From NCBI GenBank assembly GCA_026770705.1, contig JANJGN010000189.1, positions 930,001 to 986,846 on the forward strand: a DNA stretch of 56,846 nt, written 5' to 3'. Made by a program: the position numbers and the translations under genes. Origin of the DNA: Isurus oxyrinchus. Lineage: Eukaryota. Each line of letters starts with the position of its first letter. Position 1 is the first letter of the stretch. The notes under the pieces are model-generated. The model worked only from the letters and a program-made list of their open reading frames with translations. It did no database searches and was not told the origin of the DNA. Below, one piece after another: positions 24,678-47,669 of the stretch.

Positions 24678-25295
24678 GTACTGAGGTAGTGCGGCACTGT
24701 CGGAGGTTCAGTACTGAGGGAGTGCTGCACTGTCGGAGGGTTTGAACTGAGGGAGTGCGGCACTGTCGGAGGTTCAGTACTGAGGGAGTGCTGCACTGTC
24801 GGAGGGTCTGAACTGAGGGAGTGCTGCACTGTCGGAGGCTCTGAACTGAGGGAGAGCTGCACTGTCGGAGGGTCTGAACTGAGGAAGTGCTGCACTGTCG
24901 GATGGTTTGAACTGAGGGAGTGCTGCACTGTCGGAGGGTCTGAACTGAAGGAGTGCTGCACTGTCGGAGGGTCTGAACTGAGGGAGTGTTGCACTGTCGG
25001 AGGGTCTGAAATGAGGGAGTGCTGCACTGTCAGAGGGTCTGAACTGAGAAAGTGCTGCACTGTCAGAGGGTCTGAACTGAGGGAGTGCTGCACTGTCAGA
25101 GGGTCTGAACTGAGGGAGTGCTGCACTGTCGGAGGTTCTGAACTGAGGGAGTGCTGCACTGTCGGAGGGTTTGAACTGAGGGAGTGCTGCACAGTCGGAG
25201 GGTCTGAACTGAGGGAGTGCTGCACTGTCGGAGGGTTTGAACTGAGGGAGTGCTGCATTGTCGGAGGGTCTGATCTGAGGGAGTGCTGCACTGTC
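24678..25295. repeat. 33-bp minisatellite, local variant GAACTGAGGGAGTGCTGCACTGTCGGAGGGTCT
   Basis: About 18 copies; source of the 270-aa and 181-aa repetitive ORFs. Confidence 0.95.
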
Positions 25296-25637
25296 TAAAG
25301 AACATTGTACAAATAGCACAAAATTTCATCTGATGCCTGTGTCTCATGCTAACATGAAGTTCATGCACACAACAGGAATATTTCTCGCTGTTTCTCTGCA
25401 GCAAGACAGCTTTGGTATCACACCACCCACTGGCAAGAGTGTGCAGTTACAATGTGACATGTTTACATTGGAAATTTCTATTATAAAGATGGACAGAGGA
25501 ATTCATCTGATTGGAAAACGTGACAACAGGAAGCTATGTCTTTGAGCCAAGTATTTTGCAGCAAAACAAGAATTTTAATCTTTAAATATCTACAGAACAG
25601 GCTGAGCATTTTAATCACTTGAGTTAATCAATGTAAT

Positions 25638-26027: not shown

Positions 26028-26167
26028 TCAAACAGTCTGTCGACTTCCTTTCACTGTTTGTCTCTCCCAGACACAGACTCCAGCGATAGTGATAACCACA
26101 GCCACAAGGAATATCACAGCTCGTATTCCCAGGATCAGGATCACGTGCAGAATCTCTCCTCCACTGT
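26028..26167 (-). CDS. Activating Siglec-like gene: TM + short cytoplasmic terminal exon
   Basis: Acceptor tgtgttctctag|AC (phase 1); DSGGEILHVILILGIRAVIFLVAVVITIAGVCVWERQTVKGSRQTV*. Hydrophobic helix with an internal Arg; frame not shown in the ORF track. Confidence 0.85.
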
Positions 26168-27288
26168 CTAGAGAACACACAGAAAGAAATCATCACTGAC
26201 TCTCCGCTTTCAATCTCTCACTCTGGCTGAACAATCAAGCTTCATATCACTGCAACATTTGCTGTAATATTGACCCATCCACTGGGATTCAATGTGGAAT
26301 GAATGTTTTCATTGTAAACACTCTAAGAGTGGACAATCGGAACTTTCTCCTTAGCGTGGAACATTGGTGAGAATGGATCATTGTGCTGTTGGACTCCCTG
26401 TCCAATGTTTCTCTCCATCGCTGTGTACAGGATTGTGCTGTAGAAAATTCTGGAAACCTTTAGTGCCGGGTGAAAATCCATCTCAGCCGTGTGTGCGAAT
26501 CGGGCAGTATCGGGATGGACTCCCCCACGGACTTACACCCCCCGCTTAATAAACAGTTCCAATCTTTACCCAGAGAGAGGGGAGAATATGGAACTCGCTC
26601 CCACAGGGAATGGTTGAGGTGAATAGTAGGAAATTAGGAAGTGAAATTGCTTGAAAAGCTTGGAGATGCAAGGGTTAAGTGTTACCATGCTACCACTGGT
26701 GGGAGAGTGTAACTACAGCGTGATGTTTACATAGGCAATCCCCATTATGAACAAGGACATTGGACATCATGTGAAAAATGGGCACTGGAAAGCTGAGAAC
26801 TTGATGTAAGCTTTTCAGCAACAGGAATTCCCTTCCTAAACCTCTCCACTTCCCTCTTACTCTCAGATACTCAAACAAAATTTCACACAAAATCACGTAA
26901 GGAGGAATTGGGACTGGTGACTGGTCAAAGAGTTAGATTTCAGGAAGGTTCTTAAAGTAGGATAGAGAGTTGGAGAGGCAGAGAGTATCTGTGAGTATCT
27001 CTGTGCATCTGAGTGTCTGTAATAGACTTTGCAATTTCCATATTCTTCCATAAATATGAAAGGGAACACAAATCCCAGAATCCAGGTCAACTCTCCGGTG
27101 CAGCACTGAGGGAGGTCAGGTAATCCACAGGGGAGTATGTGCTAGTGTGTTTGTTTGTGAGTGTGTCTTTGTGTGTGCTCATAGATGTGGGATTGTGTGT
27201 ATGCAGGTGTCTATTTAAGGCTGTATATTTATGTGTGTTTTTGTAGTGTTTCAATCTGAGAGAGATGTTGAAGTTTGTCTTAACTAAC

Positions 27289-27434
27289 GTTCCACAGTGA
27301 TGGTTATGAACCCCTCCACTGCTCCATGTTCATTCTCTGAGCACACTGATAGTCTCCAGTGTCCCTGGATGTAACGTGAGGAATCACCAACCACAGCTCA
27401 TTGTTGGAACTTGTTCTGTTCATTGTGATATTCA
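27289..27434 (-). pseudogene. Dead third Ig (C2/I-set) exon remnant
   Basis: NITMNRTSSNNELWLVIPHVTSRDTGDYQC-(1-nt deletion)-ENEHGAVEGFITITVE, donor C|GTTAGT; 5' half and acceptor missing. Confidence 0.8.
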
Positions 27435-27763
27435 GATGTCAGGACTGGACTCAACAAGACAGATTGCAGGTTTACCAACAGAAAGTGAACAACAATTTAT
27501 ATTTAAAGGGAAGAGAGTGCTGGTTAATCAGCAAGTGGTCTCTGATTGGAGGAGGTGTTGCCATGGAAAATAATGTGTGTGAGATGCAAAGTTTAGACAG
27601 CTTGTCTCTTCATTCAGCAACAATCAAATAAAGATCAGTTAACTTCTATCGACTGTGAAGCACTTTGAGAGGCATGAGAATGTGGACACTGAGAACGGGC
27701 TGCACTGTCAGACGGTCAGCGCTGAGGGAGTGCTGATGTAGAATGAAGGGTGTCCGTACTTAC

Positions 27764-28060
27764 CTTGCATAGTTAGTACGAGGGTCCGCTCCGATGAAAC
27801 AGATGGATATCTCACTCTGCAGCTGAGATTGTGTCTGTGGTGTTTGAGTGATGGGATCAGGGTCAGAACAGAAGTATAGGTCAGAGTGACACCATGCTGA
27901 GTTACAGTGTTTGAGACTGATCCAGGTACGTCAGTGGGAGTGTCCCAGGTTAAGACAGGTGCTGCTGTTCCATTGCACGTTGTGTTGAAGGTGCAGCTTA
28001 CATCCACACGCTTTCCTGCAATAATTTCAGCAGGGAATATCATGGGTTTATCTGTGAAAT
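27764..28060 (-). CDS. Activating Siglec-like gene: C2-set Ig exon (domain 2)
   Basis: Acceptor tgtctgttag|AT, donor CAAG|GTAAGT, 297 nt, phase 1-1; DFTDKP..SCTFNTTC..P.LTW..TSVLTLIPSLKHH..NLSCRV, the Siglec domain-2 pattern including the interdomain Cys. Confidence 0.92.
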
Positions 28061-28788
28061 CTAACAGACAGAGAATGGATCCTTTTAGAGAAATATAACG
28101 TGAAGCATCAGTTCAAATAGAAATCACAGTCCCACAAGAAAAAGCACTTTTACAAGGATGATATCAGATCTGAGAGGTTACAATGATTAGGAGAGAATTT
28201 CCTGCTTTGAGACTTTGGTGTTTCTGTCTCTCAGCTTAATACACGTTCACTCCGAGACACTTGAACTGATAATAGTGGGTGAGGGTGGTGGAGCAGACCA
28301 GAGTTTGGAGTGCACTAACCCATCAGTCCCTCAGCGATCTAGGCCATTTTTTACTTTGCAATTTGTGGGAGCTTGCTGTGCGCAAATTGGTTGCTGTGTT
28401 TCCCACATTACAATAGTAACTAAAATTCAGGAATCAGCTCATTGGCTGTGAAGTGATTTGGTCCGTGCTGAGGTGGTGAAAAGTGCTACAGAAATGTGAA
28501 TCTTTCTTCTGTCGCTAAGTCAGACTTCGAGACAGGATTAGAGAGATCGATGGGAGTGGATAACCTGATAACATTGATGGACACAGTCAATACATTTAAT
28601 CATTGATATTAAAGTGAGTATTAGAGGTTGCTTTAGGAGTGAACTGGAAGCTATCACCAGGTTATTGAGAATCAGACAGTGTGTTATAATAAGCTGTGTT
28701 TTGTGTTAATATGTAAACGTCACAGTTTGTGTTGTTTCCCATTGAGTGTTGAATGTGAATTGTTGAGTAATTATAACACAGCACTTAC

Positions 28789-29154
28789 CAGAAACGTGAA
28801 CCTGGGTTACAGGGTAATAGTTATAGCTCGGACCATTGTCAAATTCTATTCTGAAAAAATAAGGTCCTGCATCTTCCCATGTGATGTTGTTTATAATCAG
28901 GGAACAGTCGCCATCTTTCAGGTCTCCAGACAGCCGGGTCCGATGGTGGAACCGTGGTAACTCGTGACTGTGATCCTTGGAGTGAAAGGCTATAGACGAT
29001 GTTCTCCATTCCTCATTATTAAGCCAGACTCCACGTCGCGGTTGGTTTTCCAGACATGATGGATAACTATAATGACATGGAATCTGTACACAGGAACCTT
29101 CCTGCACTGTCACCTCTCGTGGAGTGTCACCTTTCCACTCTTGTGAGGGTTCAG
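28789..29154 (-). CDS. Siglec V-set exon V4 (nearest C2)
   Basis: ctccccag|CT...TCTG|GTAAGT, 366 nt open; GSCVQIPC..W..RTRLSGDLKDGDCSL..EDAGPYFFRIE with the essential Arg. Confidence 0.93.
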
Positions 29155-31090
29155 CTGGGGAGAGAAATCTCAATATTTAACTCTGAATGGTTTGTGGATC
29201 CACTGAACCCGATATTTACAGATGAGGCTGAATTGGGGGGATGGTCAATACTGAGGAGAATGGCAATAAATTATATTGTCAGGAAGAATAGAAAAACAGG
29301 ATATAATTTAAATGGTGACAGGCTGCAGTATGCAGTACAGAGGGATCTGGGTGTCCTTGTACATGAATCACAGAAAGTCAGCATTCAGGAACAACACGGA
29401 ATGAGGAAGGCAAGTGGAATGTTGGCCTTTATTGCAAAAGGATGGAGTATAAAAGGAGGGAAGTCTTGCAACAGCTACACAGGGCGTTAGTGAGATTGTA
29501 ACAGGATCATTGTGTACAGGCAGTTCAGAGAAGCTTCACTGGGCTGATTCCTGGGATTAAAGGGTTTGTCCTGTGAGGAAATGTTGAGCAGGTTGGGCCT
29601 GTATCCATTGGAGTTTAGAAGAATGAGGGGTGACCTTATTGAAACATATCCGATTCCGAGGGGGCTTGACAGGGTGGATGCTGGGAGGATGTTTCCCCCT
29701 CGTGGGGGAATCTAGAACCAGGGAGCACAGTTTCAGAATGAGGGCTCTCCCATTTAAGACTGAGATGAGGAGGAATTTCCTCTCTCAGAGGGGCGCTAGC
29801 CTGTGGAATTCTCTTCCCCAGAGAGCAGTGGAGGCTGGGCCATTGAATAGACTCAAGGCTGAGTGAGGCAGGTTTTTGATCGACAAGAGAGTCAAGGGTT
29901 TGGGGGACAGGCAGGAAAATGGAGTTAAGGCCACAACCAGATCAGTGAGAGCAGGCTGGAGGGGCCGAATGGCCTGCTCCTGTCCCTATTTCTTATGTTC
30001 CTACATTCTTACCTTCTTAAAATATTAAAGCTGCAGAAAAAACATGCAAGTGACTGACCCGCTCGACCCACTTTCCATCTGGGGGTCCCATGGGGAGGAC
30101 CCTTCCTGAGCCAGATCCACCAGCCAACATGGTCTGGATCCGAGCACAGGAGACACGGGGGGGGAGTGACTAACAGGCTCCTTGTGACAGGCCCCGTCTG
30201 TCCAATGGCTGGCTTTCAGCTGCCAAGGCCAGAGTTGTCCTTGCTAAAACCGGCTCAGGACAGGCCAGGACCCCTGTGCAGACCCCCTCCAGCGCTGCAG
30301 CCTCTGTACAAACCCCTCATGCGCTTGTGGAGAGACACAAACAAGGCTGCTCATTACCGAGGAGAATCCCCTCTACAGACTAAGGTGCTGACTCATCACC
30401 CTAAACTCGGCAAATGAGGAGGCTCTCGCTCGGTATCGGGGCTTGGCATTCGCTCAATAAAAATAATCAAATGACATTTTGGTCAGAAATCTAAGGAGGT
30501 TGTACATTCCCTCAAAAATAAGACTCGATCTGGGGTCGAGAGTCAAAGGGCAACAACTTATATTTTCACAACAACTTTAACATGACAAATCACCTCAAGG
30601 TGCTACACAGGAGCGTCATAAAACAAAGTATGTCACCCAGACACGTGTAGATATTAGCGACAGCTGACCAGAAGAGGTCGGTGTTATGGAGAGACAGAGA
30701 GAAAGAGACAGAGAGAGAGAGAGAGAGAGGGAGAGGAAGAGGGAGAGGGAGAGGTTTAGGGTGGGAAGTCTAGGGTGGTGAAAGGCGCTGTAGAAATGTA
30801 AATCTTTCTTCTGTCGATATGTCAGACTTCAAGACAGGATTTGAGAGATTGATGGGAGTGGATAAACTGATAACATTGATAGACACAGTCAACACATTTA
30901 ATCATTGATATTAAAGTGAGTATTAGACATTGCTTTAGGACTGAACTGGAAGCTATCACCAGGTTATTGAGAATCAGACAGTGTGTTATAATAAACTGTG
31001 TTTTGTGTTAATATGTAAACGTCACAGTTTGTGTTAATTCCCATTGAGTGTTGAATGTGAATTGTTGAGTAATTATAACACAGCACTTAC

Positions 31091-31459
31091 CAGAAACGTG
31101 AAGCTGGGTTACAGGGTAATAGTTATGGCTCGGACCATTGTCAAATTCTATTCTGAAAAAATAAGGTCCTGCATCTTCCCGTCTGATGTTGTTTATAATC
31201 AGGGAACAGTCGCCATCTTTCAGGTCTCCAGACAGCCGGGTCCGATGGCGGAACCGTGGTAACTCGTGACTGTGATCCTTGGAGTGAAAGGCAATGGGAG
31301 CCCAGGGAATCTGTTTCTCATTATTAAACCAGAGTCCACCTCGCGTTTGGTTTTCCAGACACGATGGATAACTGTAATGACATGGAATCTGTATACACGA
31401 ACCTTCCTGAGCTGTCACCTCTCGTGGAGTGTCACCTTTCCACTCTTGTGACAGTCCAA
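31091..31459 (-). CDS. Siglec V-set exon V3
   Basis: 369 nt open, phase 1-1, canonical AG/GTAAGT, YFFRIE. Confidence 0.93.
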
Positions 31460-33375
31460 CTGGGGAGAGAAATCTCAATATTTATCTCTGGATGGTTTGT
31501 GGATCCACTAGACTCAAAATTTACAGATGAGGCTGAATTGGGGGGATGGTCAATACTGAGGAGAATGGCAACAAATTATTTTGGCAGGAAGAATAGAAAA
31601 ACAGGATATTATTTAAATGGAGACAGGCTGCAGAATGCAGTACAGAGGGATCTGGGTGTCCTTGTACATGAATCACAGAAAGTCAGCATTCAGGAACACC
31701 ACGGAATGAGGAAGGCAAGTGGAATGTTGGCCTTTATTGCAAAGGGATGGAGTATAAAAGGAGGGAAGTCTTGCAACAGCTGCACAGGGCGTTAGTGAGA
31801 TTGTAACAGGATCATTGTGTACAGGCAGTTCAGAGAAGCTTCACTGGGCTGATTCCTGGGATTAAAGGGTTTGTCCTGTGAGGAAATGTTGAGCAGGTTG
31901 GGCCTGTATCCATTGGAGTTTAGAAGAATGAGGGGTGACCTTATTGAAACATATCCGATTCCGAGGGGGCTTGACAGGGTGGATGCTGGGAGGATGTTTC
32001 CCCCTCGTGGGGGAATCTAGAACCAGGGAGCACAGTTTCGGAATGAGGGCTCTCCCATTTAAGACTGAGATGAGGAGGAATTTCCTCTCTCAGAGGGGCG
32101 CTAGCCTGTGGAATTCTCTTCCCCAGAGAGCAGTGGAGGCTGGGCCATTGAATAGACTCAAGGCTGAGTGAGGCAGGTTTTTGATCGACAAGAGAGTCAA
32201 GGGTTTGGGGGACAGGCAGGAAAATGGAGTTAAGGCCACAACCAGATCAGTGAGAGCAGGCTGGAGGGGCTGAATGGCCTGCTCCTGTCCCTATTTCTTA
32301 TGATCCTACATTCTTACCTTCTTAAAATATTAAAGCAGCAGAATAAACATGCAAGTGAATGACCCGCTCGACCCACTTTCCATCTGGGGGTCCCATGGGG
32401 AGGACCCTTCCTGAGCCAGATCCACCAGCCAACATGGTCTGGATCCGAGCACAGGAGACACGGGGGGGGAGTGACTAACAGGCTCCTTGTGACAGGCCCC
32501 GTCTGTCCAATGGCTGGCTTTCAGCTGCCAAGGCCAGAGTTGTCCTTGCTAAAACCAGCTCAGGACAGGCCAGGACCCCTGTGCAGACCCCCTCCAGCGC
32601 TGCAGCCTCTGTACAAACCCCTCATGCGCTTGTGGAGAGACACAAACAAGGCTGCTCATTACCGAGGAGAATCCCCTCTACAGACTAAGGTGCTGACTCA
32701 TCACCCTAAACTCGGCAAATGAGGAGGCTCTCGCTCGGTATCGGGGCTTGGCATTCGCTCAATAAAAATAATCAAATGACATTTTGGTCAGAAATCTAAG
32801 GAGGTTGTACATTCCCTCAAAAATAAGACTCAAGCTGGGGTCGAGAGTCAAAGGGCAACAACTTATATTTTCACAACAACTTTAACATGACAAATCACCC
32901 CAAGGTGCTACACAGGAGCGTCATAAAACAAAGTATGTCACGCAGACATATGTGGAGATATTAGCGACAGCTGACCAGAAGAGGTCGGTGTTATGGAGAG
33001 ACAGAGATAAAGAGACAGAGAGAGAGAGAGAGGGAGAGGTTTAGGGTGGGAACTCTAGGGTGGTGAAAGGCGCTGTAGAAATGTAAATCTTTCTTCTGTC
33101 GATATGTCAGACTTCAAGACAGGATTTGAGAGATTGATGGGAGTGGATAAACTGATAACATTGATAGACACAGTCAACACATTTAATTATTGATATTAAA
33201 GTGAGTATTAGAGGTTGTTTTAGGACTGAACTGGAAGCTATCACCAGGTTATTGAGAATCAGACAGTGTGTTATAATAACCTGTGTTTTGTGTTAATATG
33301 TAAACGTCACAGATTGTGTTATTTCCCATTGAGTGTTGAATGTGAATTGTTGAGTAATTATAACACAGCACTTAC

Positions 33376-33744
33376 CAGAAACGTGAAGCTGGGTTACAGG
33401 GTAATAGTTATGTCTCGGACCATTGTCAAATTCTATTCTGAAAAAATAAGGTCCTGCATCTTCCCGTCTGATGTTGTTTATAATCAGGGAACAGTCGCCA
33501 TCTTTCAGGTCTCCAGACAGCCGGGTCCGATGGCGGAACCGTGGTAACTCGTGACTGTGATCCTTGGAGTGAAAGGCAATGGGAGCCCAGGGAATCTGTT
33601 TCTCATTATTAAACCAGAGTCCACCTCGCGGTTGGTTTTCCAGACACGATGGATAACTGTAATGACATGGAATCTGTACACAGGAACCTTCCTGAGCTGT
33701 CACCTCTCGTGGAGTGTCACCTTTCCACTCTTGTGACAGTCCAA
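33376..33744 (-). CDS. Siglec V-set exon V2
   Basis: 369 nt open, phase 1-1, canonical AG/GTAAGT, YFFRIE; three amino-acid differences from V3. Confidence 0.93.
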
Positions 33745-35289
33745 CTGGGGAGAGAAATCTCAATATTTATCTCTGGATGGCTTGTGGATCCACTAGACTC
33801 AAAATTTACAGATGAGGCTGAATTGGGGGGATGGTCAATACTGAGGAGAATGGCAACAAATTATTTTGGCAGGAAGAATAGAAAATCAGAATATTATTTA
33901 ACTGGAGACAGGCTGCAGAATGCAGTACAGAGGGATCTGGGTGTCCTTGTACATGAATCACAGAAAGTCAGCATTCAGGAACACCACAGAATGAGGAAGG
34001 CAAGTGGAATGTTGGCCTTTATTGCAAAGGGATGGAGTATAAAAGGAGGGAAGTCTTGCAACAGCTGCACAGGGCGTTAGTGAGATTGTAACAGGATCAT
34101 TGTGTACAGGCAGTTCAGAGAAGCTTCACTGGGCTGATTCCTGGGATTAAAGGGTTTGTCCTGTGAGGAAATGTTGAGCAGGTTGGGCCTGTATCCATTG
34201 GAGTTTAGAAGAATGAGGGGTGACCTTATTGAAACATATCCAATTCCGAGGGGGCTTGACAGGGTGGATGCTGGGAGGATGTTTCCCCCTCGTGGGGGAA
34301 TCTAGAACCAGGGAGCACAGTTTCGGAATGAGGACTCTCCCATTTAAGACTGAGATGAGGAGGAATTTCCTCTCTCAGAGGGGCGCTAGCCTGTGGAATT
34401 CCCTTCCCCAGAGAGCAGTGGAGGCTGGGCCATTGAATAGACTCAAGGCTGAGTGAGGCAGGTTTTTGATCGACAAGGGAGTCAAGGGTTTGGGGGACAG
34501 GCAGGAAAATGGAGTTAAGGCCACAACCAGATCAGCGAGGGCAGGCTCGAGGGGCCGAATGGCCTGCTCCTGTCCCTATTTCTTATGTTCCTACATTCTT
34601 ACCTTCTTAAAATATTAAAGCTGCAGAATAAACATGCAAGTGACTGACCCGCTCGACCCACCTTCCATCTGGGGGTCCCATGGGGAGGACCCTTCCTGAG
34701 CCAGATCCACCAGCCAACATGGTCTGGATCCGAGCACAGGAGACACGGGGGGGAGTGACTAACAGGCTCCTTGTGACAGGCCCTGTCTGTCCAATGGCTG
34801 GCTTTCAGCTGCCAAGGCCAGAGTGGTCCTTGCTAAAACCGGCTCAGGACAGGCCAGGACCCCTGTGCAGACGCCCTCCAGCGCTGCAGCCTCTGTACAA
34901 ACCCCTCATGCGCTTGTGGAGAGACACAAACAAGGCTGCACATTACCGAGGAGAATCCCCTCTACAGACTAAGGTGCTGACTCATCACCCTAAACTCAGC
35001 AAATGAGGAGGCTCTCGCTCGGTATCGGGGCTTGGCTTTGGCTCAATAAAAATAATCAAATGACACTTTGGTCAGAAATCTAAGCAGGTTGTACATTCCC
35101 TCAAAAATAAGACTCAATCTGGGGTCGAGGGTCAAAGGGCAACAACTTATATTTTCACAACAACTTTAACATGACAAATCACCCCAAGGTGCTACACAGG
35201 AGCGTCATAAAACAAAGTATGTCACGCAGACACATGTGGAGATATTAGCGACAGCTGACCAGAAGGGATCGGTGTTATGGAGAAACTTA

Positions 35290-36890
35290 AAAGAGGGATG
35301 AAATGGTTAGTGAGAGAGAGAGAGTGAGTGTGAGGGATGGAGAGGGCTTAAGGGAGGGTATTACGGAGCTCGGTCCCCAGGCAGCTGAAGGCATGGCCAC
35401 CGATGTTAGAGTGTTGAGATCGGGGGATGGTCAAGATACTGGAATTGGAGGAGCGCAGAGACCTCTGAAGGTTGGTGGGTCTGGAGGAGGTTACAGAGAT
35501 AGGGAGGGTTGTAGGGGCTGGAGGAGGTTACAGAGATAGCGAGGTTTGTAGTGATTGGAGGAGTTATAGCGATAGGGAGGTTTGTAGGGGCTGGAAAAGT
35601 TAAGAGAGATTGGGAGAGTGTAGGGTCTGGAGGAGTTTGCAGAGGTCGGGAGGGTTGTAGTGACTGGGGCAGGTTACAGGGGCAGGGAAAGTTGTCGGGA
35701 CTGGAGCAGGCTACAGAGATAGGGAAGCTTTTAGGGGCAGGAGGAAGTTACAGAAATAGGGAGGTTTGTAGTGGCTGGAGGAGGTTGCAGAGATTGGTAG
35801 GTTTGTTGGGCAGGATGAATTTACAGATATAGGGAAGCGGTAGAGGCTTGAAGAGGTTACAGAGAATGGGAGGGTTGTAGGTACTGGAGGAGGACAAGGA
35901 GATTACAGAGATAGTGAGGAAACAAAGATGAAAATTTGGACATTGAGACTTTGCTTGACCAGGAGCCAGTCTCGGTCATCGAGCAGAGCGGGTGATAAGG
36001 GAACGGGACTTGGTGTGAGTAAGGACGTGGTCAGCAGTTTTGGATGGCCTCAAGTTTATGGAGTGTAGAGCGTGTGTTGGAACAGTCGAGACTGGAGGTA
36101 ATGAAGGCGTGGATGAGGGTTTCAGCAGCAGATGAGCTGAGACAGGGTGACGTCGTGCGATGTTACGGAGGTGGAAATAGACGGTGTTAGTGAGGGTGCA
36201 GATAGGAGGCCGGAAGCTCATCTCAGGATCAAATGGGACAACAAAGCTGTGAACAGATTGGCTTCAATCTCAGAGAGCTGCCAAGGAGAGGAATGGAGTT
36301 GGTAGCGAGGGAACAGAGTTTGGAGCGGGGAATGAAGACAATGGCTTCAGTCTTTCCAATATTTAATTGGAGGGAATTTCTGCCCATCCAGTACTGGATG
36401 TCGGATAAGCAGCCTGATAATTTAGCAGCAGTGGAGGAGTCGAGAGAGGTGGTGGTGAGGTAGAGCTGGGCATCCTCAGTGGACAGGTGAAAACTAACAC
36501 TGTTCAGATGATGCTGCAAAGCCATTGCAAGTGATTCTCTGGCTACGATGAGATGGATAAGAATGGAGCCAGGGGAGAGCAGTCCCACCCAGCTGGACGA
36601 CAGTGGAGAGGTGTTGGAGGAGGATGGTGTCGTCGAGCGTGTCAAAGGCTGCAGACAGATCGAGAAGGACGAGGAGGGAAAGTTGACCTTTGTCACAGTC
36701 ACACAGGATGCCATTTGTGACCTTGATAAGAGCTGTTTCAGCACAGTGGCTGGGGTGGGAACCTGATTGGAGGGATTCAAACATGGAGTTCCGGGAAAGA
36801 TGGGAACAGATTCGGGAGATGGAAACAGGTTGCAGGACTTTGGAGGGGAAAGAGAGGCTGGAGATGGGACGGGGGTTTACACGGACAGTG
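35290..36890 (-). mobile_element. L2-clade LINE RT/3' fragment with internal 37-bp minisatellite
   Basis: ESLQSG..HCAETALIKVTN..LLVLLDLSAAFDT; LQLNIGKTEAIVF; frameshifted. Confidence 0.9.
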
Positions 36891-37148
36891 TGAGGGGTGG
36901 AAGGTGTAGTGGGGAGGAGACACTTCACTCAGGGGGGAGGTGTCATCACCCCTCAGCTCGGTTTATGTTACAGCTATGATGTGGATTCAATCACACACAA
37001 TAAGCTTATGGATCTGGGAGCAGAAATAGACAAATCATTAAAAATAGTGGCGCTGGTTAACACGGCCAAAAAACAAGCAAATCAAACACTATTATTTCCC
37101 ATTGAGTGTTGGATGTGAATTGTTGAGTAATTATAACACAGCACTTAC

Positions 37149-37523
37149 CAGAAACGTGAAGCTGGGTTTCAGGACGGTCGTTGTATCTATTCCTGTTGTC
37201 AAATTCTAGGCTGAATAAATAATATCCTGCATCTTCCCGTCTGATGTTGTTTATAATCAGGGAACAGTCGCCATCTTTCAGGTCTCCAGACAGCCGGGTC
37301 CGATGGTGGAACTGTGGTAACTCGCGATTATGATCCTTGGAGTGAAAGGCTATAGACCGTTCATTCCATTTTTCCCAATTCCTTCTCATATACCAGATTC
37401 CGACTGGTGATCTCGCTACTAAATATGATGGATAACTGTAATTACATGGAATCTGTACACACGAACCTTCCTGCGCTGTCACCTCTCCTGGAGTGTCACC
37501 TTTCCACACTTGTGATAGTCCAA
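37149..37523 (-). CDS. Siglec V-set exon V1 (divergent; essential Arg replaced by Ser)
   Basis: ctccctag|TT...TCTG|GTAAGT, 375 nt open; GSCVQIPC..GDCSL..EDAGYYLFSLE. Confidence 0.92.
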
Positions 37524-37926
37524 CTAGGGAGAGAAATATCAATATTTAACTCTGAATGTTTTCTCAATCCACTAGACTCAATATCCGCCCCGTCCATCAC
37601 TGGGGCACACAGGCTGCAGTCTGGATAATCCACAGGTCACACAATGAATGCCCCAAGGTTTCACAACAGATTGAAGAGAATTCCGGACACAGGAGTGGAC
37701 AAGTTCATTCTAAATTGGCTCATGACCCTCAGGTACCTATTTAGTGAAGTCAGTCTGCCACCCAACACAGTGTCTACAAGACACACTAATTGAAGTGACT
37801 TCACTGCTGATTTACAACGTAGGACAATGGATTAGGAGCCTTCAGAATTCCCCCATTATCACCATCATGAATCATGAATTGGCCTAGCTGTCCTAGATCC
37901 TCAGTGTCTAAGGCAGTGGTTCCTAT

Positions 37927-38852
37927 TGTGATGTAAGTATAATAATTTTCATAATATTTTATAGTATATTGTGAAGTAGGTTTATGGGGGTACGCGTGAT
38001 GGGTCTGCATGTGATTTAAGTACATTTGGAGTTAATTAGATTGGAAGTTTAAAATGATCAAAAGGAGCTAGGTGCTTGACATGCTATTGAGGAAACATGG
38101 ATGCTGCTTAGCATGGAAGGTATGAAGAGAATTTGCATTTTTCTATCAATGAAGGGGTTGTTGGATTTCAAAGGAATCTTAGCTTGTTTACAACTAGCCA
38201 GATAAGCAAGACTAAGGAATGTGTTTATTTTTCTCAAAGGCTCCTGGCAATATGGGCACCACGAAAGAGTTTGTTATGTGGAAGATACAGTTTCAAAAAC
38301 ATATGGAACAATAGAATTTTCATGTTACAAAGAGAGAAATATATATCTATCAGGGAGAATGAAAGGCTATGTGTCAGAATGCCATGTAAGATCTAACACG
38401 AGTGTGTGATATAGTCTTAATGAAACCTCTAGCATTTGTGCACAAGCCTGCTATCCAACAGAACTGAAGTTGGGGAAAAGCCACTTGGAATTCCTCTGTG
38501 CAGGGTATTGCTTTTATATTGTGTTAACTTGCTGGGTTTGTTTTAAATATAAAGTCTATTTTTGGACCGTTGCCTTAAAGGGAGTGTAACTGGGAGTCAG
38601 TTTAATTCAGAATTTTAAGAATTATTATAGTGGTAATTGTAGAGTTATGTATGTGCTTCAAATCATTTATTTTGAGAGCAAGTATTTTAATTTAATTTTC
38701 AAATCGCTAAAGGTCTTTGTGTAATTATTGCTTCTGAATTCAGTGCACACATCTCATAATAAATACAAATTGCAAAATCATTATGATCATGTGACCATCT
38801 TTCTCTCATGAACTTGGTCTGCCTGGCACACATCACCTGCCAAGTGATAACA
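37927..38852 (+). mobile_element. Probable solo LTR
   Basis: TGTGATG...GATAACA termini, AT-rich with AATAAA near the 3' end; TSD imperfect. Confidence 0.5.
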
Positions 38853-38856
38853 CTGT

Positions 38857-40173
38857 TGTAATACGCCTTTCAGGGATAGCAGCATGACATCACTCGAGGG
38901 GAAGTGTGTCATGTGATTTTAGGAATTGGGTATAGCTTAAGTAAGTTCTATGTGTATTTGTGTTTGTTAGGGATAAGGCATATGTTTATGTTCAAGTTTA
39001 GTTTGATTTCTGTATTTGTGTGTTAAGAAAGGGGGAAACTTCAGTTTTGGTTTCATTTTCGTTTAGCAATCTAATGGGGTTTGATGTCTCTTGAAGGGAA
39101 GTCAAAACAAACACAATGTGTAAGAAACTGTGCTATTGCTAAGCAACAGTGATCCAGAGGGACGGACCCATAGAGACAGAGAAAAACAGAAATGTGCTTT
39201 CAGTTTGGTTGAAAGGAGTTGCCAGGAGAAGCAGCAAAGGAGCGGGACAGATAGTCAGTCCCAAAGTAAAGAAGAAGCCAAAACTATCGAGTGGAACAGG
39301 AGAAAGAGCCAAGAAGACCTTCTACTCCAAAGAAGATCAGGAATCTGAAAAAGGTCCTGTTAAGTCGAGATAAGATTGAGGAGCAGAGGAGGGATCCAAG
39401 CTAAAAGAGAAAAAGCAAAAGGACACAGACCTAAAGCAAAAAAGGCTGATTAGAAGCCAGAAGATCACAGGAGACAGCGAAATGTTGATGTCTTCTTACT
39501 ATGACCATGTGAAGCCATGGTGTTCCATTGGCATGACTGAGCATTGGAGAGACAATGCGTAGAAGGAAGGCTGAATGCATGTGGCGATCCAGGGGGCAGG
39601 AACATGGGAAGGAGAGTTTGAAATCGTGGAAGTGGACCCTTGTGGAAGGTCTCTGAGTGAAAGTGTCATGTTAGAGAAGATTCCAAAGAGAGCACTTGAC
39701 GAGTAGAGATTGGAAACTCTCATGTGAAAGATACAGTTTTGTAAGACCAGTTGCCTCATGGTGAAACAAGTGTCTGGAGTCAGTTGAGCTGAAACACATA
39801 GCATTTGTTCCAATTGGGGTCTATCACTTGGTTACAGAATGTGGTGTCCCTGACACCAGGTCGTCTATTGGTTTGCATGAACTGTGTACTTAGTGTGAAC
39901 ATGAGAGTATAAGATAGTTATTGTAACTTGTATTCTACTTATGAATCTGTAAATGTATAGGTCTGGGTGAAGGAGTAATGTAATTTGGTTTGTCTTTCCT
40001 AGTTTAATAAATGTTTTATTCTTTTGTTAGAAGGTCATCAGATGATTCCTGTGACTCTGTTCAGTAGCAGCACTCCACATTCCTAAATAAAAAATAAAAG
40101 TTAGGACCTATCAAGCTGAGTTCCACCCTGGGATCTGACTTGCCCAGTAGTAACATCAGCTGGGATGATAACA
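38857..40173 (+). mobile_element. Probable solo LTR
   Basis: TGTAAT...GATAACA termini, AATAAA near the 3' end; no clean TSD. Confidence 0.5.
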
Positions 40174-40399
40174 CCATCCAGTCCAAGTTTCACTTTGGCC
40201 TGTGAGCAGAACACAGCTCACACAGTTTGGCTGCAGGTGTCTCCCAGCTTTCTATCCTTGTACATCTGTTCTCATGTCCCCATTCTAAATAACTGAACCC
40301 ACAATGTATTTACCCAATTCCGTATCAGTGGCTGGTGCCTTTATATCATTATAAAAACACAACATGGTGATCAGCGGTGGCCAAACATTCTGGCCGCAA

Positions 40400-43300
40400 G
40401 ATTCAGTACAGGTATGACATGGTGAACAGCCTGAGATCGAGCTACATGACATGAGATGACCCTCGACGCTTTGGTCAGACCACAACAGAGACACAGCATC
40501 AGAGAGGGTTGAAATCGCAGTGTACTGACTCTCAGGAAACCTTTGAAGACACAGTGACGGGAAAGAGCTCAAGTAAAGAGCTGGGGAGCAGACGGATCCC
40601 TCGTGGTGGGATTACAGCACACGGCCTGTAGGTCAGTGAGTGGGATAGTGTGTATCGCCAGGACCAGCAGCGGGTTAGCTCAGTCAGGGAAGGCGAGTGA
40701 CCAGGGTGTGGGCTGGATCGATAGTGAGCGAGGGAGAGTCAAACACACAAAAACCATTATAAAAATCAGCCCAGAGAAGTTAGTGATTATAACGGGCGGC
40801 TTCGAGATTGCTGAACAGCAAATTGAATAAAAAACAAAGACTCCATTACTCCGTGGTGTGTTCCTGCCGCAACCCATCTTCGTGGGCGGAGCTTCGGAAA
40901 AGCACGTGAAAGGGGCTAAAGCGACACTCATCCCAGGTCCTGTAGGAGAAGGAAGGTCAAAGGAATATTGTCAGAATGTCCACAAAATTCCCCAGTTTGA
41001 ACTGGGATGTAGCTGACCGACTATCTGAATTCAGAATGTTTAAACAGCGTACAGAACTCTGGTTTCCTGATTCTGGTGTGACTGAACCAGACGAACCACC
41101 CATAAAAATTCACCTCGCGATTGGGAATGAAGGTCTACACAGGCTGAACACATCAGGATTAACAGCAGAAGAGCGAAAGGATCCCCAATAGACACGGACG
41201 GTATTGGAAGACAGGTTCAGAATCAGGTGAAACTCCAAATTCATCAACTAGAGTTTATGTCATTTCATCAGACTACACAATCCATAGACCACTTCATCAG
41301 CCGATGTAGAGAAAAGGGTACGCACTGTGATTTCAAACACAGAGCCTGCAGACAGAGTTGTTGAGTTGGCGATCGCATCCACTCCCATGGAAGCCTTCCA
41401 GAAAGATCTGCTAGATAAGACCAAAACCTATAGCATTGAAGAGCTACTCAAGGATGGACATAAATACGAAGTAATCCTCGCAGGTCAACGAAGCTTACAG
41501 GTCCTCAGTACAACATCAATTGTTGACACACTCACTAGCACATCCAAACCTAGTGAGACGTGTGGCAGGCACCAAGGAAATGCCCAGCTTTCCACCAATC
41601 CTGCAAGGCTTGTAGCAGAAAGGGCCATTGACAGCGGCAGGGCACTAGAGCAAAGGCTGATGCAGCTACAAAGAGCCGTGCGCTGATCCAAACAGACCCT
41701 ACACAACGGGGAACCTTCAAGCAATAAGAATGACCATCCGCTATCCCATCAGGAACATATACATGTGGTGACTGACAAGCCAGGAAATGGCGATGATGTG
41801 CATGACGAGACGAGGTGCGGTGATCGATATTCCACCTCTCACACATATCCTGACGTGGCTTGCCAATAAATTGTGGATTGTTGTCCTTAATGATATCTCT
41901 GGGCACATCAAAGAAACTGAAAATGTCCCATAGGTGTTAGATTTTCTGGCCCCACCCACTGCCAGGATTGTCCGGTCCGGCCGAAAGCCAATGGATTTAT
42001 ATTTGTCCCAATCTCCCACGGCAGGTCCCACCATGACTGGGCCGGAAAACCCCGGCTTAGAGTTTTTGCAACACTTGTGCTCAACGTATTGTGCAACTGT
42101 TGAACAATTTCACACCTATTACACCATCAATCTCATGGAGAACAGATGCCGTCACTTCACCCGCACTATTGGCCAAGATTCCAATTATCTGCCCTGAGAA
42201 AGTTTCTACCTCCCCTTTATTGGCCAAGATTGATACAGGGACAAGTGCCAACATTCCCCTCCCCCAGCCCACCCCAGCAAATTTTCAAAGACATATATCC
42301 AAGGACATGGAAGTCCATGGGGAAACCTACTGCTGTGTACAACACTTCACCAACTCCATGTGCAGAATCCATAGTCCTAGAGTGCAAGTACAATCAATCT
42401 TCCTGGGTGTCACAGATGTTCTACATCGTGCAGAATAAAGGCTGAGCAATTGCAAGTCTACCGGCATGCGGTGACCTCACACTAGTGACAATCCATGGAA
42501 TCTGTCAGACCTCACATGGGTCAACCTCAGAAACTACCCCATCACCTCAGTTCATTGACATAACATTGAAATATGCAGAAAGTTTCAACAATATTGGCAG
42601 TTTCAAGGGAGCTGCAACATTACACCTGCAGGAGAATGCAAGTCTGTCAATTGATCCAGTATATTTAGCACAACAGAAATGACAGCAGCTACAAAAGGGA
42701 ACAGTGAAAAATTCTACAGGAACTGGGGAAATATCATTGAAAGGGTGGCCTGATTCAGCTTGACCTCATCGGGATAAGTGAGGCATCTCCCAGGGAACCA
42801 TTTTTAATGGCAGGCAGGGCATCATACCGGAGCCTTTGTGATCCTATATTCTTCAACAACTTCATCCCTCACACATGGGCACAGATCAGACAAGGAGACT
42901 CACAAGAGATATACTCCCTGGCCGGTTATGAAGAATGACCTTGAAGTCGTTGTAGGGAAGTACGAGGCTTGTCAAGAGGATGAGCCAAGTCAGCACAAAG
43001 AACCACTGATTCCACAGGAAATTCCTGCCCATTCTTAGTCCAAAATCACATCTGAATCCTTTCATGTCCATGTCACTGACTTCATCATCATCGTCGACAG
43101 CTTTACCAGATATCCCATTATTCAAAAATAGCACAACACACCAAGCACAACTGGTGCACACACTCTAAGCACTATTTTCAGTTTATTTGGTGAGCCTAGG
43201 GACATGATTACAGATAATCTGGAATATCAATCACACTATTTCTTCTCCTCATTACCCCAGATCTAACAGCCTCGCTGAATGAATGATTCACACAGTGAAA

Positions 43301-44190
43301 TCCCTAATTCTCAAATGTAGACAGGCCAAGCAAGATCCACACATTGCAATGTTACATCTGAGATCGACACCTACAACTGCAACTTTGTTAAATTCATTCA
43401 TGGGATGTGGGAGTCACTGGCCAGGCCAGGATTTATTACCCATCCCTAATGTAAGAGTCAACCACATTGACGTGGAGTCTGGAGTCACATGTCGGCCAGA
43501 CAATTTTGTTCCCTAAACGGCACTGGTGAACCAGGTGGGATTTCCAACAATGGTTTTGTGGTCATCACTAGACTTTGAATTTCATCTTTTTATTAAATTC
43601 AAATTCCATCATCTATTATGACAGGATTTGAACCCATATGCTCAGGACATTACCCTGGGTGTCTGAATTACTCATCTAGCAACAATACCACTACACCATC
43701 ACCTCACCTTATTCCATCACTGACAGAGAGCATGTTTGGTGGGCCAGTAGTGACCAATTTCGCTATTCTTACCCATTCTACTCTCTCAGAAACCAGAGCA
43801 CAACTTTTAAAACTACAAGAGAAGATAAGGAATGTTCATGATAAAAATGGAGGTGCAGAGTTGCCAAGTTTACAGTTGGGACAAGTTCACATCCAGGATC
43901 CCACAGAAGGTTCATGACCACCAGCCGAGGTGACAAGGATTTGTTCAGAACCAAGGGCCTATGGAGTCAAACACACAAGGGCACAGCGGTGAGGCGGAAC
44001 CGAGGATAAATCAGATCCATTCCCGCTCCTATTCCATCGAGGAGAAGATCCCACATGAAATCAGGAACAACATCCAAGGGTGACAATCCCACAGATCACT
44101 GTGAGCAGTTAAAGACACCTCCAGACAAGGTAACCAGCACAAGATCTGGGTGGACCAGAAGGTCAAATCCACACTTTAGAGACTCAAATA
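40400..44190 (+). mobile_element. Degenerate Ty3/Gypsy internal region (gag, protease, integrase) in the leader-V intron, with a nested SINE at ~43395-43705
   Basis: MSTKFPSLNW..F.MFKQR (gag), AKIDTGTSAN (protease), IIIVDSFTRYP / PHYPRSNSLAE / TVKSLILKC (integrase); many stops. Confidence 0.85.
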
Positions 44191-45121
44191 TTCAACAGTT
44201 CCATACACTTATGTAATTGTCAATAAATATGAACATGATATGAGAAACCGCTTGCTCCCTATCCTTCTCAAAGATCCATTCCTGCAGCAGGAGCCTGAAG
44301 AGTTATTGAAAAGGGACTTAATTTATCGGATTGTCGAATGATCCGGAACAGAAGGAAGCCATTTGGCCCATCGAGCATGTGCTGGGCCTTTGAAAGATCT
44401 GTCCAATTAGTCCCACTCTCACCTCTGATCTCTCCCCCACAGCCCTGCAAAATGTCCCCTTCAAATCAAATCAAATGTATACAACATAATAAAGCCTCTG
44501 TGGACACTATACAATTATTTTGAAATCCAGCTTTTCTAAGCTCATTAAAGCTGTTTTCAGGTTTGAACTAGAGTTAGACAATCAGCCCAATGTTGCTTCA
44601 CAGAATGATTTGAAATTCATGGTGAGAATGGACAGGAAGTGTGACACTGAACAGCCTGTCTATTCTAGGAGCTGCTGTGTTGTCTTCATGGGAAATTCTT
44701 TTTAAAATCAGCAAAAGACACAAATTTCAGATTATTGCTATCAGGATCCTAGAACCTGGATAGATTTCATCCCCCAGTTTTTATCCCTGATTTTCAGCTC
44801 AACCCATCCCTCCCCATCTCTCACTGACCAACACCCGACATCACCTGAAGTTTAAGATTCTGCTCTCGCTGCTACAATTCTGCTAACCCTGTAACCTCCT
44901 CCAGCCCCTACAACCCTCTGAGATCTCTGCTCTCCTCCAATTCTGCTGTCATACAGGGAGTCAGTGTATATCAGTGAGCACAGGGGTGATGGGTGAATGG
45001 GACTTGGTATGAGTTTGTACACTGGCTCACTGCTGAATCAGTTCCCAGTCACAGCTCAATAAGAATGATCTTTTACGAAGACTATTGACCATAAATCTGT
45101 CCAAGCTGACGATGATATTAC

Positions 45122-45161
45122 CTTGGAAAAGTGACAGGAAGAAGTAAGATTTCCCGATCAT
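45122..45161 (-). CDS. Signal-peptide exon L2 (MIGKSYFFLSLFQ); whole exon 45122-45203
   Basis: Acceptor ctttctctttcag, ATG at 45161, phase-1 donor CAAG|GTAAT; in frame with every V exon. Confidence 0.82.
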
Positions 45162-45611
45162 TGTCCACTCATAGATATTCCATCAGCTTCTAACTCTGAA
45201 GTTCTGAAAGAGAAAGGAGTTAATGAGACTTCAACTCTTGTCCGACAGCTCTCGAGAGATCAGAACTGCTTTTAGACAATGTCTTCACAGACTAATTTGA
45301 TTCTCGGTGGGATGATAGATGCTCTGCAGAGAGTTACAAGGTTTTAAGGAAGAAAAACAATGAAGGATTTGCATTTCTATACAACCTTTCACCTCCTCAG
45401 GGCATCCCAAAGCTCATGTCACTCCACTTTCCTCGCCCCTTGAGCTAGAAAGATGTTCTGTATGACAGACTTGACCCTCACACCCAGATCTCAATAATCA
45501 TTAGAAATCTTTCAAAGGCATCAATCATTGGAGTCTGTCTTTATAAAGTCACAACATCAACAAAGGACGGTGTTGGTGGTGGAAGTGAATTCCAATCGTT
45601 CCGTTACTTAC

Positions 45612-45751
45612 CCAGGACCTGTCCGACTGCTCGCCTGGGGAGGAACTGCCCACACACTCTGCTAGGGCTGAATGACCTCTTCCTGTGCTGCTCCCTCTGT
45701 GTATTTAATTAGAAAGAGCTGATGTGTCACTGTGAGACAAAAAGAGGAAGT
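45612..45751 (-). promoter_or_regulatory. Candidate promoter 2 and non-coding exon 1
   Basis: Donor TGG|GTAAGT at 45612; PU.1/Spi-type AAAGAGGAAGT at 45741-45751; AT-rich TAATTAAATA between them. Confidence 0.55.
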
Positions 45752-46888
45752 TGGAACAAAGTGAGTGAACAGCACTTTGCTGTGCACTGTCAGTAAACCC
45801 TGTGTCTGTATAAGAATATAAGAACAGAACAAGTAGGATCAGCTGGACACCCTGATATTTTCATTCCCTATATTCCATCAACTCATTTTTTTATCTACTC
45901 ACTGAAACTATTTATCTCCCTCTGCAGCCTCTTTGTGTCCTCCTCACAACTTGCTTTCCTGCCCAGCTTATATATTTCCTACCTATCTTCACCATACAGT
46001 CAGAAAATCTGTCTACAGTACAGTCAGTCCCTTCATCCAAGTCACTAATGAAGATTGTGAATAGTTGAGGCTTTGAAATATCTGTCTAATTATTCCCACG
46101 CTCAGCTCTACTCTCTCCTCCAAAGCCCTGCAAAATGTCCCCTTCAAGTATTTATCCAGTTCCCCTTCTGAAAGTTCCTGTTGAATCTGCTTCCACCGCC
46201 CTTTCAGGCAGTGAGTCAATGGTCTCTCTCTGAGCTGCAAAGTGCTCAGATTCTGTGAAATTTAAACTCTGCAGCAGATCAGAGACACTCATGATAACTC
46301 AGAATATTTGACAGTTTTACACACAGACACCTTTGCCTTCCTTCTCTCTATCAGTTATCTTGCTCCCTTATTGAAGTATCTAGCAAGGTGAGAATGGACA
46401 GGAAGTGTGACACTGAACAGCCTGTCTATTCTAGGAGCTGCTGTGTTGTCTTCATGGGAAATTCTGTCCAATATCAGCAAAAGACACAAATTTCAGGATA
46501 TTGCCATCAGAGTCCTAGCACCTGGATATATTTCATCCCCCAGTTTTTATCCCTGACTTTCTGCTCAACCCATTACTCCCCGTCTCTCACTGACCAACAC
46601 CCGACATCACCTGAAGTTTAAGATTCTGCTCTAGCTGTTACAATCCTGCCTAATTGGGTAACTGTCTCCAGCCCCTACAACGCTCTGAGATCTCTATTCT
46701 TCTCCAATTCTGCTATCAGACAGGGAGTCAGTGTATATCAGTGAGCACAGGGGTGATGGGTGAATGGGACTTGGTGTGAGTTTGTACACTAGCTCACTGC
46801 TGAATCGGTTCCCTATCAGAGCTCAATAAGAATGCTATTTTACAAAGACTATTAACCATAAATCTGTCCAAGCTGACGATGATATTAC

Positions 46889-46928
46889 CTTGAAGAAGTG
46901 ACAGGAGGAAGTAAGATTTCCCGATCAT
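46889..46928 (-). CDS. Signal-peptide exon L1 (MIGKSYFLLSLLQ); whole exon 46889-46970
   Basis: Same structure as L2; ATG at 46928, phase-1 donor. Confidence 0.82.
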
Positions 46929-47364
46929 TGTCCACTCCCAGATATTCCATTAGCTTCTCACTCTCAAACTCTGAAAGAGAAAGGAGTTAATGAGACCTCA
47001 CCTCTTGTCCGACAGCTCTCGTGAGATCAGAACTGCTTTTAGACAAGACTTACTTGATTCTCCATGGGATGATAGGTGCTCTGCAGAGAGTTACTAAGCT
47101 TTCAGAAAGAAAAACTATGTAGGGTTTGCATTTCTGTAGCACCTATCACCACCTCAGTATGTCCCAAATCTCATGACCCTGCACTTCCCTCATCCCTTGA
47201 GCTAGAAAGATGTTCTGTACAACTTGAGCCTCACACCCAGATCTCAATAATCAGTAGAAATCTTTCAAAGGCATCAATCATTGGAATCTGTCTTTATAAA
47301 GTCACAACATCAACAAAGGACGGTGTTGGTGGTGGAAGTGAATTCCAATCGTTCCGTTACTTAC

Positions 47365-47504
47365 CCAGGACCTGTCCGACTGCTCGCCTGGGGAGTAACT
47401 GCCCACACGCTCTGCTTGGGCTGAATGACCTCTTCCTGTGCTGCTCCCTCTGTGTATTTAATTAGAAAGGGTTGATGTGTCACTGTGAGACAAAATGAGG
47501 AAGT
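47365..47504 (-). promoter_or_regulatory. Candidate promoter 1 and non-coding exon 1
   Basis: Donor at 47365; AAATGAGGAAGT (PU.1-like) at 47493-47504. Confidence 0.55.
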
Positions 47505-47669
47505 TGGAACAAAGTGAGAGAACAGCACTTTGCTGTGCACTGTCAGTAAACCCTGTGTCTGTATAAGAATATAAGAACAGAACAAGTAGGATCAGCTGGA
47601 CACCCTGATATTTTCATTCCTTATATTCCATCCACTCATTTTTTTGTCCCCTCTCTGAAACTATTAATC

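Follow-up and report, generated by a model that had tools for sequence, protein, structure and literature searches.

A minus-strand gene in a 56,846-nucleotide (nt) window of Isurus oxyrinchus DNA was found to carry four V-set exons (V1 to V4) in series between its leader exons and a single C2-set exon. All coordinates below refer to this window, and the exons of the gene span 26028–47513. The gene is most likely a CD33-related-like Siglec of a lamniform shark, as judged from its domains and motifs, and sialic-acid binding is a prediction from these.

On balance, we lean towards a main product that strings several of the V domains in series, accompanied by minor skipped forms. This product would consist of the leader, (V1), V2, V3, V4, C2 and a transmembrane (TM) segment containing an arginine (Arg), and would reach up to about 650 amino acids (aa). 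The minor exon-skipped forms would include a single-V receptor of about 281 aa. Which V domains would co-occur in one mRNA of this exact gene we infer.

Siglecs are textbook one-V receptors, and Siglec-12, with two V domains, is the odd case. CD33-related Siglecs are usually discussed as a mammalian feature. This locus and its relatives in other sharks and rays show a large elasmobranch expansion of CD33-like Siglecs, in which the lectin exon itself increased in copy number, reaching four V exons in this gene, and was combined with an activating anchor. Serial use of the V domains would make these receptors multivalent, rod-like sialic-acid sensors that arose by very recent exon duplication, and would provide a natural experiment in the evolution of avidity and reach in innate receptors.

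Exon layout and Siglec identity

The order of the exons on the minus strand is two cassettes of 5' untranslated region (UTR) and leader, followed by V1, V2, V3, V4, C2 and TM (Table 1). The V1–V4 and C2 exons are all open, are in phase 1-1 and have an AG acceptor and a GTAAGT donor; all introns are GT-AG. This is a tandem multi-V layout, in that at least two in-frame V-set exons lie in series between leader and C2. Searches of the whole window by tblastn and blastn found no extra V, C2, leader or TM copy amid the V exons.

An earlier interpretation of this DNA, made without database searches (the sequence-only reading), had described four V exons with one constant region in this order. It had also described the V exons as open and in phase 1-1 with canonical splice sites, and had placed no leader, C2 or TM exon among them. 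The exon reading and the window searches confirmed this layout, and the open frames, phases and splice sites were borne out for all four V exons.

Two details required correction. The GLSQ-xW start that had been assigned to every V exon did not hold for V4, which begins (A)EPSQEW. The sequence AEPSQEWKG also opens the membrane-proximal V of tandem models from Scyliorhinus and Mustelus. We interpreted this start of V4 as an old interdomain linker, not the end of a signal peptide.

The second correction concerned the exon inventory, of which the order and the single C2 and TM exons stood, but which had missed a decayed Ig exon between C2 and TM. Each of its three pieces, AICLVESSPD, HLNITMNRTSSNNELWLVIPHVTSRDTGDYQC and SENEHGAVEGFITITVE, lies in a frame of its own, and the 5' half is gone. 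By homology it corresponds to the third Ig domain of the relatives P0005 (Mustelus) and P0006 (Scyliorhinus), which indicated that this Siglec gene lost one domain.

The leader/UTR cassette is a duplicated 1.75-kb repeat with a period of 1753–1767 nt. The L1 peptide matched the leaders of white shark and basking shark models.

Table 1. Positions of the exons and related features of the Siglec gene in the window
Feature	Position	Strand	Description
5'UTR exon 1 (promoter cassette 1)	47365..47513	-	GTAAGT donor; 96% copy of the cassette 2 UTR exon
Leader exon L1	46889..46970	-	Encodes MIGKSYFLLSLLQ; phase 1 at end
5'UTR exon 2 (promoter cassette 2)	45612..45760	-	Counterpart of 5'UTR exon 1 (96% identical)
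Leader exon L2	45122..45203	-	Encodes MIGKSYFFLSLFQ
V1, V-set exon	37149..37523	-	375 nt
V2, V-set exon	33376..33744	-	369 nt; GLSQ start, YFFR Arg present, extra Cys (YPSC)
V3, V-set exon	31091..31459	-	369 nt; differs from V2 by 4 nt
V4, V-set exon	28789..29154	-	366 nt; (A)EPSQ start, YFFR Arg present, extra Cys; membrane-proximal V type
C2-set exon	27764..28060	-	297 nt; CTFNTTC, Siglec-type extra Cys
Decayed Ig pseudo-exon	~27296..27480	-	Between C2 and TM; two frameshifts
TM + tail exon	26028..26167	-	Encodes SGGEILHVILILGIRAVIFLVAVVITIAGVCVWERQTVKGSRQTV*; intramembrane Arg (LGIRAV), 12-aa tail without Tyr, stop
Three tandem ~2.3-kb units	28409..35286	.	One each of V4, V3 and V2, with transposon-derived intron

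The Pfam V-set profile matched all four V exons (E 3e-13 to 5e-12), as did Ig_CD22 (about 1e-9), and the C2 exon matched C2-set_2 (1e-8). In a sequence search, the best solved-structure matches of V2 were Siglec-5, -7, -8 and -10, CD33, MAG and sialoadhesin.

The V domain of Siglecs has a pattern of three cysteines (Cys), consisting of the interdomain Cys plus the B–E intrasheet pair. This pattern (C-x4-C ... C) was present in all V exons as GSCVQIPC ... DGDCSLI, and C2 carried the Siglec-type extra Cys (C-x5-C) in SCTFNTTC. The YFFRIE of V2, V3 and V4 aligned with the essential-Arg motif of Siglec-5 (YFFRVE) and Siglec-7 (YFFRME). V1 has YLFSLE, in which the essential F-strand Arg for sialic acid is replaced. 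The Siglec-type identity and the Cys motifs proposed by the sequence-only reading were in agreement with the Pfam hits, the structure matches and these motifs.

The TM exon specifies ILHVILILGIRAVIFLVAVVITIAGVCVW and then a tail of 12 residues, ERQTVKGSRQTV*, that lacks tyrosine (Tyr) motifs. The exon is conserved in white shark (96% identity to P0165 and P0169) and in Scyliorhinus torazame (80% to P0006). The Arg in the membrane and the short, Tyr-less tail read as the signature of an activating paired receptor, and signalling may go through a DAP12-like adaptor via this Arg. The paired Siglecs (Siglec-5/14 and Siglec-11/16) offer a parallel. Here too the ectodomain is near-identical to those of paralogues tailed with immunoreceptor tyrosine-based inhibitory or switch motifs (ITIM/ITSM; white shark P0158 and P0279), but is joined to a basic TM residue and a short tail.

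V-exon joints in RNA

Logan contigs of four RNA runs from two species, one of which (X1) is from the species of the window, were aligned on 27760–33759. The depth of such contigs is in general a poor measure. In X1, the depth was 4.5k–22k on exons versus 0–2k in unique intron stretches. This indicated that the source was RNA, and that V2-, V3- and V4-type exons were present in mature transcripts.

Three X1 contigs on V4 extended upstream of its acceptor with the V-donor end TTCACGTTTCTG (TTCACGTTTCT(G)). This overhang is the exact 3' end of a V exon, which showed that some V donor had been spliced to V4. In a contig of a second run (X5), an end resembling that of V3 (10 mismatches in 106) was joined to a start that differed from that of V4 by one base; this joint comes from a paralogue. 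Splicing of V exon to V exon in mRNA was thus found twice, as V to V4 in X1 and as V to an AEPSQ-type V in X5, in short contigs for which paralogues are possible.

The depths in X1, weak as this measure is, were nearly equal for V4, for C2 and for the mean of V2 and V3. Under an exclusive choice of V, the depths of the V exons would be expected to sum to that of C2. The observed depths therefore fit serial inclusion better than exclusive choice.

Joints that skip V exons were also present. Two X1 contigs at the V3 acceptor carried a 68-letter overhang that matched L2 at 45124–45153 with one synonymous mismatch. This showed that L2 had been joined to a V2/V3-type exon without V1 in between. A V1–3-type donor was linked to the C2 acceptor by a GT..AG joint from 33376 to 28060, which leaves out V4. 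Its depth in X1 was 161, compared with about 14,700 for C2 (about 1%). It was also found in run X15 at a depth of 30.5, where the V side was just 93% like V2 and so belongs to a paralogue or another allele. When the V2 exon was used in a length-limited search for junction-spanning open reading frames (ORFs), three annotated proteins were returned, none of them from Logan RNA assemblies.

The sequence-only reading had favoured mutually exclusive use of the V exons. A strict choice of one V exon per transcript, in the style of Dscam or the protocadherins, would give L-Vn-C2-TM products of about 280 aa, and we consider it very unlikely. The phases of the exons are compatible with it, white shark has single-V models of 280–281 aa, and the L2-to-V2/V3 and V-to-C2 joints are of the kind that it predicts. 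However, the RNA contained V-to-V4 joints, the direct V-to-C2 joint was rare, and tandem-V models are conserved across orders.

The structure of the locus also argued against strict exclusivity. The gene has just two promoter/leader cassettes, which precede the entire set of V exons, and no V exon has a promoter or leader of its own. Inclusion of multiple V exons keeps the frame, so nonsense-mediated decay cannot enforce exclusivity. No docking or selector arrangement was seen: the only inverted repeats of this kind in the introns were copies of a 37-nt minisatellite. The latter is common in the window and was rejected as a docking or selector mechanism. The locus thus resembles the Dscam clusters and the clustered protocadherins in its array of similar, frame-compatible variable exons upstream of constant exons, and differs from them in joining more than one V per transcript and in having neither a promoter per variable exon nor docking/selector pairing of RNA.

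One array of this minisatellite, in the V1–V2 intron (35470–35893, plus strand), is complementary to a copy just downstream of L2 (44872–44943). Their pairing in the pre-mRNA would loop out V1 and would fit the L2-to-V2/V3 joint. The same satellite also occurs at 11.4–11.7 kb and 14.4–15.6 kb, so this pairing may be due to chance.

The joints that the sequence-only reading had proposed to count gave, in the contigs, a divided answer. The L2-to-V2/V3 and V-to-C2 joints were found as it anticipated, and the V-to-V4 joint spoke against exclusive use. Its product of about 280 aa agreed with these two skipping joints and with the 280–281-aa white shark models, but not as the main form. Proteins with one V and of this length are probably made, either as a minority or from paralogues. 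The alternative that it had listed, a tandem-V protein, gave the best fit to the V-to-V4 joints and to the tandem-V relatives.

Between these two lies a regulated use of the V exons as cassettes, in which one locus would produce receptors with one to four V domains and differing N-terminal V, not strictly one V per mRNA. We regard this as possible but give it limited weight. It accounts for the splicing of L2 straight to a V2/V3-type exon without V1, and for the V(1–3 type)-to-C2 joints without V4 in X1 and X15. All combinations are in frame by virtue of the 1-1 phase of every exon. White shark has a corresponding range of models, namely a 281-aa single-V model, activating two-V models of 404–422 aa and one leader-to-C2 model without V. 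Furthermore, most of the differences between V4 and V2/V3 fall in the C-C' region.

On the other hand, the V-to-C2 skipping joint reached only about 1% of the C2 depth in X1, and the joints may stem from paralogues or from haplotypes that differ in copy number. Three residues separate V2 from V3, so a choice between them gives almost no diversity, and dN/dS among the V exons (0.5–0.9) gives no sign of diversifying selection. In its fullest form, which we entertain tentatively, skipping would give one to four lectin domains with a varied outermost V (the Arg-less V1, V2/V3 or V4), and the YPSC Cys (described below) would staple each non-first V to the one before. Alternative use of the V domains would give one gene a small repertoire of receptors for glycans; combinatorial use, if true, would let a single locus adjust both valency and specificity in an activating glycan receptor.

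X1 further contained abundant mosaic V contigs, which passed from one V into the continuation of another (joints 28997–31363 and 31296–33650, depths 1487 and 80). Their register shifts by about 60 nt around the C-C' loop. Such V exons with other loops are absent from the window, which indicated that further family members are expressed.

Shark and ray relatives and the extra cysteine

A HMMER search of all libraries returned 293 proteins at E <=1e-10, and 241 family proteins were collected for counts of V domains. One V was present in 143 of these, two in 52, three in 10 and four in 3. The close relatives are NCBI models named Siglec-5/7/8/10/12/13/14, CD33-like or MAG-like. They came from Carcharodon, Cetorhinus, two Scyliorhinus species, Mustelus, Chiloscyllium, Hemiscyllium and Heterodontus, and from Pristiophorus, Heptranchias, Hypanus, Hemitrygon, Mobula, Pristis, Amblyraja and others. 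Models with two to four V domains in series were found in at least eight sharks and rays of at least four elasmobranch orders, among them NCBI models from Carcharodon, Cetorhinus, Scyliorhinus, Mustelus, Chiloscyllium and Hypanus.

White shark models came closest, with identities of 94–97% in V2, 92–96% in C2 and 96% in the TM exon, which places the window in a lamniform closely related to that shark. Activating white shark models have the layout L-V1-V2-C2-TM(Arg) with 404–406 aa, one of them with four transcript accessions, and a V-V(AEPSQ)-C2-TM model has 422 aa. There are also L-V-C2-TM models with a single V (280–281 aa), which arise either from separate genes or from exon skipping, and a leader-to-C2 model without any V.

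In a tree of the V domains, V1 fell together (support 100/95) with the V domains that stand first in lamniform two-V models. V2 and V3 were sisters, placed beside the second V of white shark models. V4 clustered with V domains of the AEPSQ type from basking shark and white shark.

The multi-V layout is already present in automatic annotation, as in Carcharodon XP_041037141.1 (L-V-V-C2-TM), Scyliorhinus canicula XP_038670873.1 (three V) and Hypanus sabinus XP_059815055.1 (four V). The Isurus gene shares with these models the leader, the GLSQ and AEPSQ types of V, the CTFNTTC C2 exon and the Arg TM exon, with 92–97% aa identity to white shark in V2, C2 and TM. It differs in combining V1, two GLSQ-type V and one AEPSQ-type V in one array, where white shark models have two V per gene. 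Literature searches found no paper on shark or elasmobranch Siglecs or on their multi-V models, and thus no published description of the annotated layout. The junction-level RNA evidence and the Cys-pattern hypothesis are added here; the gain is incremental.

Two annotated protein starts matched non-Siglec or upstream sequence in the window. A transposon ORF (MSFRPPICTLTNTVYFHL...) at 35976–36221 (minus strand), in the V1–V2 intron, agreed with the N-terminus of white shark model P0265, and the upstream ATG of leader exon L1 (MEYLGVDNDREILLPPVTS; 46889–46970) with that of model P0013. Some annotated N-termini in the shark Siglec family are probably modelling artefacts.

Mammalian Siglec-12/Siglec-XII has two V-set domains in series from duplicated V exons (PMC6288428). 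Both it and the shark gene are of the CD33-related type with more than one N-terminal V-set domain, and human Siglec-XII has lost the essential Arg (R122C), as V1 has here. The shark gene differs in having four V exons instead of two, an activating-type Arg TM with a short tail instead of an ITIM tail, just one intact C2 domain, and an independent origin in cartilaginous fish. The NCBI name 'Siglec 12' on shark models would accordingly reflect layout, not orthology.

V2, V3 and V4 contain a fourth Cys (YPSC), seven residues past the B-strand Cys (C-HYSYPS-C), which V1 lacks. The extra Cys of C2 lies six residues past its B-strand Cys (C-TFNTT-C). In the Ig topology, the B-C loop faces the bottom of the preceding domain, the site of the interdomain Cys. 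The sequence-only reading had argued that the interdomain Cys of the V domains has only one partner, that in C2; at the sequence level this was contradicted by the YPSC Cys of V2, V3 and V4. Our hypothesis is that the extra Cys of V2–V4 takes over the role of that in C2 and would bond the interdomain Cys of the preceding V.

The distribution of the extra Cys was in line with this hypothesis. Among family representatives, it was present in 20 of 28 later V domains versus 2 of 116 first or only V domains, and at least three changes were forced on the V-domain tree. In two-V shark models the first V was always without it and the last V always with it. The restriction of the extra Cys to later V domains is retained as a hypothesis, in view of two clean exceptions, white shark P0263 and P0267, which carry it in their only V. 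These exceptions, together with some middle V domains that lack it, count against the stapling of domains by this Cys.

An AlphaFold2 model of a natural Cetorhinus L-V-V protein had a predicted local distance difference test score mostly of 80–93 in its V domains. The V-V pair was compared with V-C2 pairs of known Siglecs by root-mean-square deviation (rmsd) and template-modelling score, giving 5.7 and 0.60 for Siglec-10, and 6.5–6.7 and 0.53–0.57 for CD33. Against side-by-side pairs of single-chain variable fragments, the rmsd was about 17. The model fitted the V-C2 pairs and not the latter, which predicts that one V is stacked on the other end to end, as V is on C2.

Several observations weigh against serial use as the main mode. 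The major V4-to-C2 joint expected from it was absent among the 15 joints listed (a further 86 were unlisted), which may be due to branching of the graph at the last 12 nt common to the V exons. The L2-to-V2/V3 joint, the V-to-C2 joint and the white shark models of 280–281 aa show that single-V forms are possible, and those single-V models that carry the extra Cys (280–281 aa) weaken the Cys argument. Gene models string in-frame exons by default.

The RNA support consists of short Logan contigs, not reads or full-length cDNA, and its source must also be considered. All four runs read HHGHT in C2, where the window reads HHRHN; at 27829 and 27836 the RNA has G and C, and the window T and T. HHGHT is also found in white shark. 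HHRHN is either a private allele of the window, or the RNA is from a near-identical paralogue. The RNA joints may thus belong in part to paralogues or other haplotypes. They show the behaviour of this gene family in Isurus, but only probably that of this very locus.

Origin of the V array and neighbouring sequence

V2 and V3 are 98.9% identical and three residues apart, with a synonymous divergence (dS) of 0.012. The nucleotide identity of V2 was 91.9% to V4 and 81.7% to V1. V4, V3 and V2 lie in 2.3-kb units with start-to-start spacings of 2302 and 2285 nt, each including a transposon-derived intron segment. The units of V2 and V3 are 97.5% identical over 2.86 kb, and those of V3 and V4 94.6% over 1.24 kb. 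Tracts of (GA)n coincide with the internal borders of the units, at 30689–30753 (V4/V3) and 32996–33038 (V3/V2). The similarity of V1 to the other V exons is limited to the exon and about 60 nt on either side, which suggested that V1 is an older duplicate.

These features point to multiplication of the V-set, ligand-binding exon by tandem exon duplication. V1 would be an old copy and V4 the conserved membrane-proximal V. V2 and V3 would be a very young pair, made by unequal crossing-over of the 2.3-kb unit, a process that fits the position of the unit borders at (GA)n tracts. The latter were likely the substrate of the crossing-over that multiplied the V exon.

The ratio of nonsynonymous to synonymous divergence (dN/dS) among the V exons was 0.5–0.9. 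This is relaxed and not demonstrably diversifying, and diversifying selection on the V exons was therefore left unsupported. Between V4 and V2/V3, the exon is more divergent than its flanks (91% versus 93–97% identity), with the differences falling mainly in the C-C' region. Between V2 and V3, the exon is not more divergent than the flanks.

The youth of the array raised the question of whether the additional V exons, and V3 in particular, are duplicates that have no separate role, possibly polymorphic and varying in copy number among haplotypes. The near-identity of V2 and V3, at a dS too low for decay to be visible yet, is what such duplicates would show. The (GA)n borders of the units favour unequal crossing-over, and RNA contigs of other individuals hold mosaic V exons absent from the window. 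Nevertheless, we consider this explanation unlikely. V2-, V3- and V4-type exons were far above the intron depth in X1, and V1 and V4 are old yet intact, with orthologous types in other lamniforms.

The same near-identity could result from the assembly, if haplotypes or collapsed paralogues had been wrongly put in tandem as 2.3-kb units. Two intron stretches (30158–30457 and 32463–32762) are even 100% identical over 300 nt. An artefact of this kind is nonetheless highly improbable. Overall the units are 2.5–6% apart, far above usual heterozygosity, and in a mosaic pattern. V4 has a distinct start of the old type, like arrays recur in the assemblies of other species, and V-to-V joints are present in RNA.

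Outside the gene, a further Siglec/CD22-like V-set exon lies at 8104–8391 on the plus strand, about 30% identical to V1–V4 (Pfam V-set 3e-05, just under the cut-off). It is open to about 8391, where retroelement-like ORFs (8378–10367) begin, and may be part of a disrupted neighbouring Siglec gene.

At 1–7000 and 24479–25404, the window also contains long, low-complexity, strand-skewed repeat tracts with a GC skew of up to 0.88 and, downstream of the Siglec gene, a tandem array of an approximately 30-nt repeat, which translates as ...PPTVQHSLSS.... Assembly gaps (runs of N) are present at 811–955 and 51290–51469.

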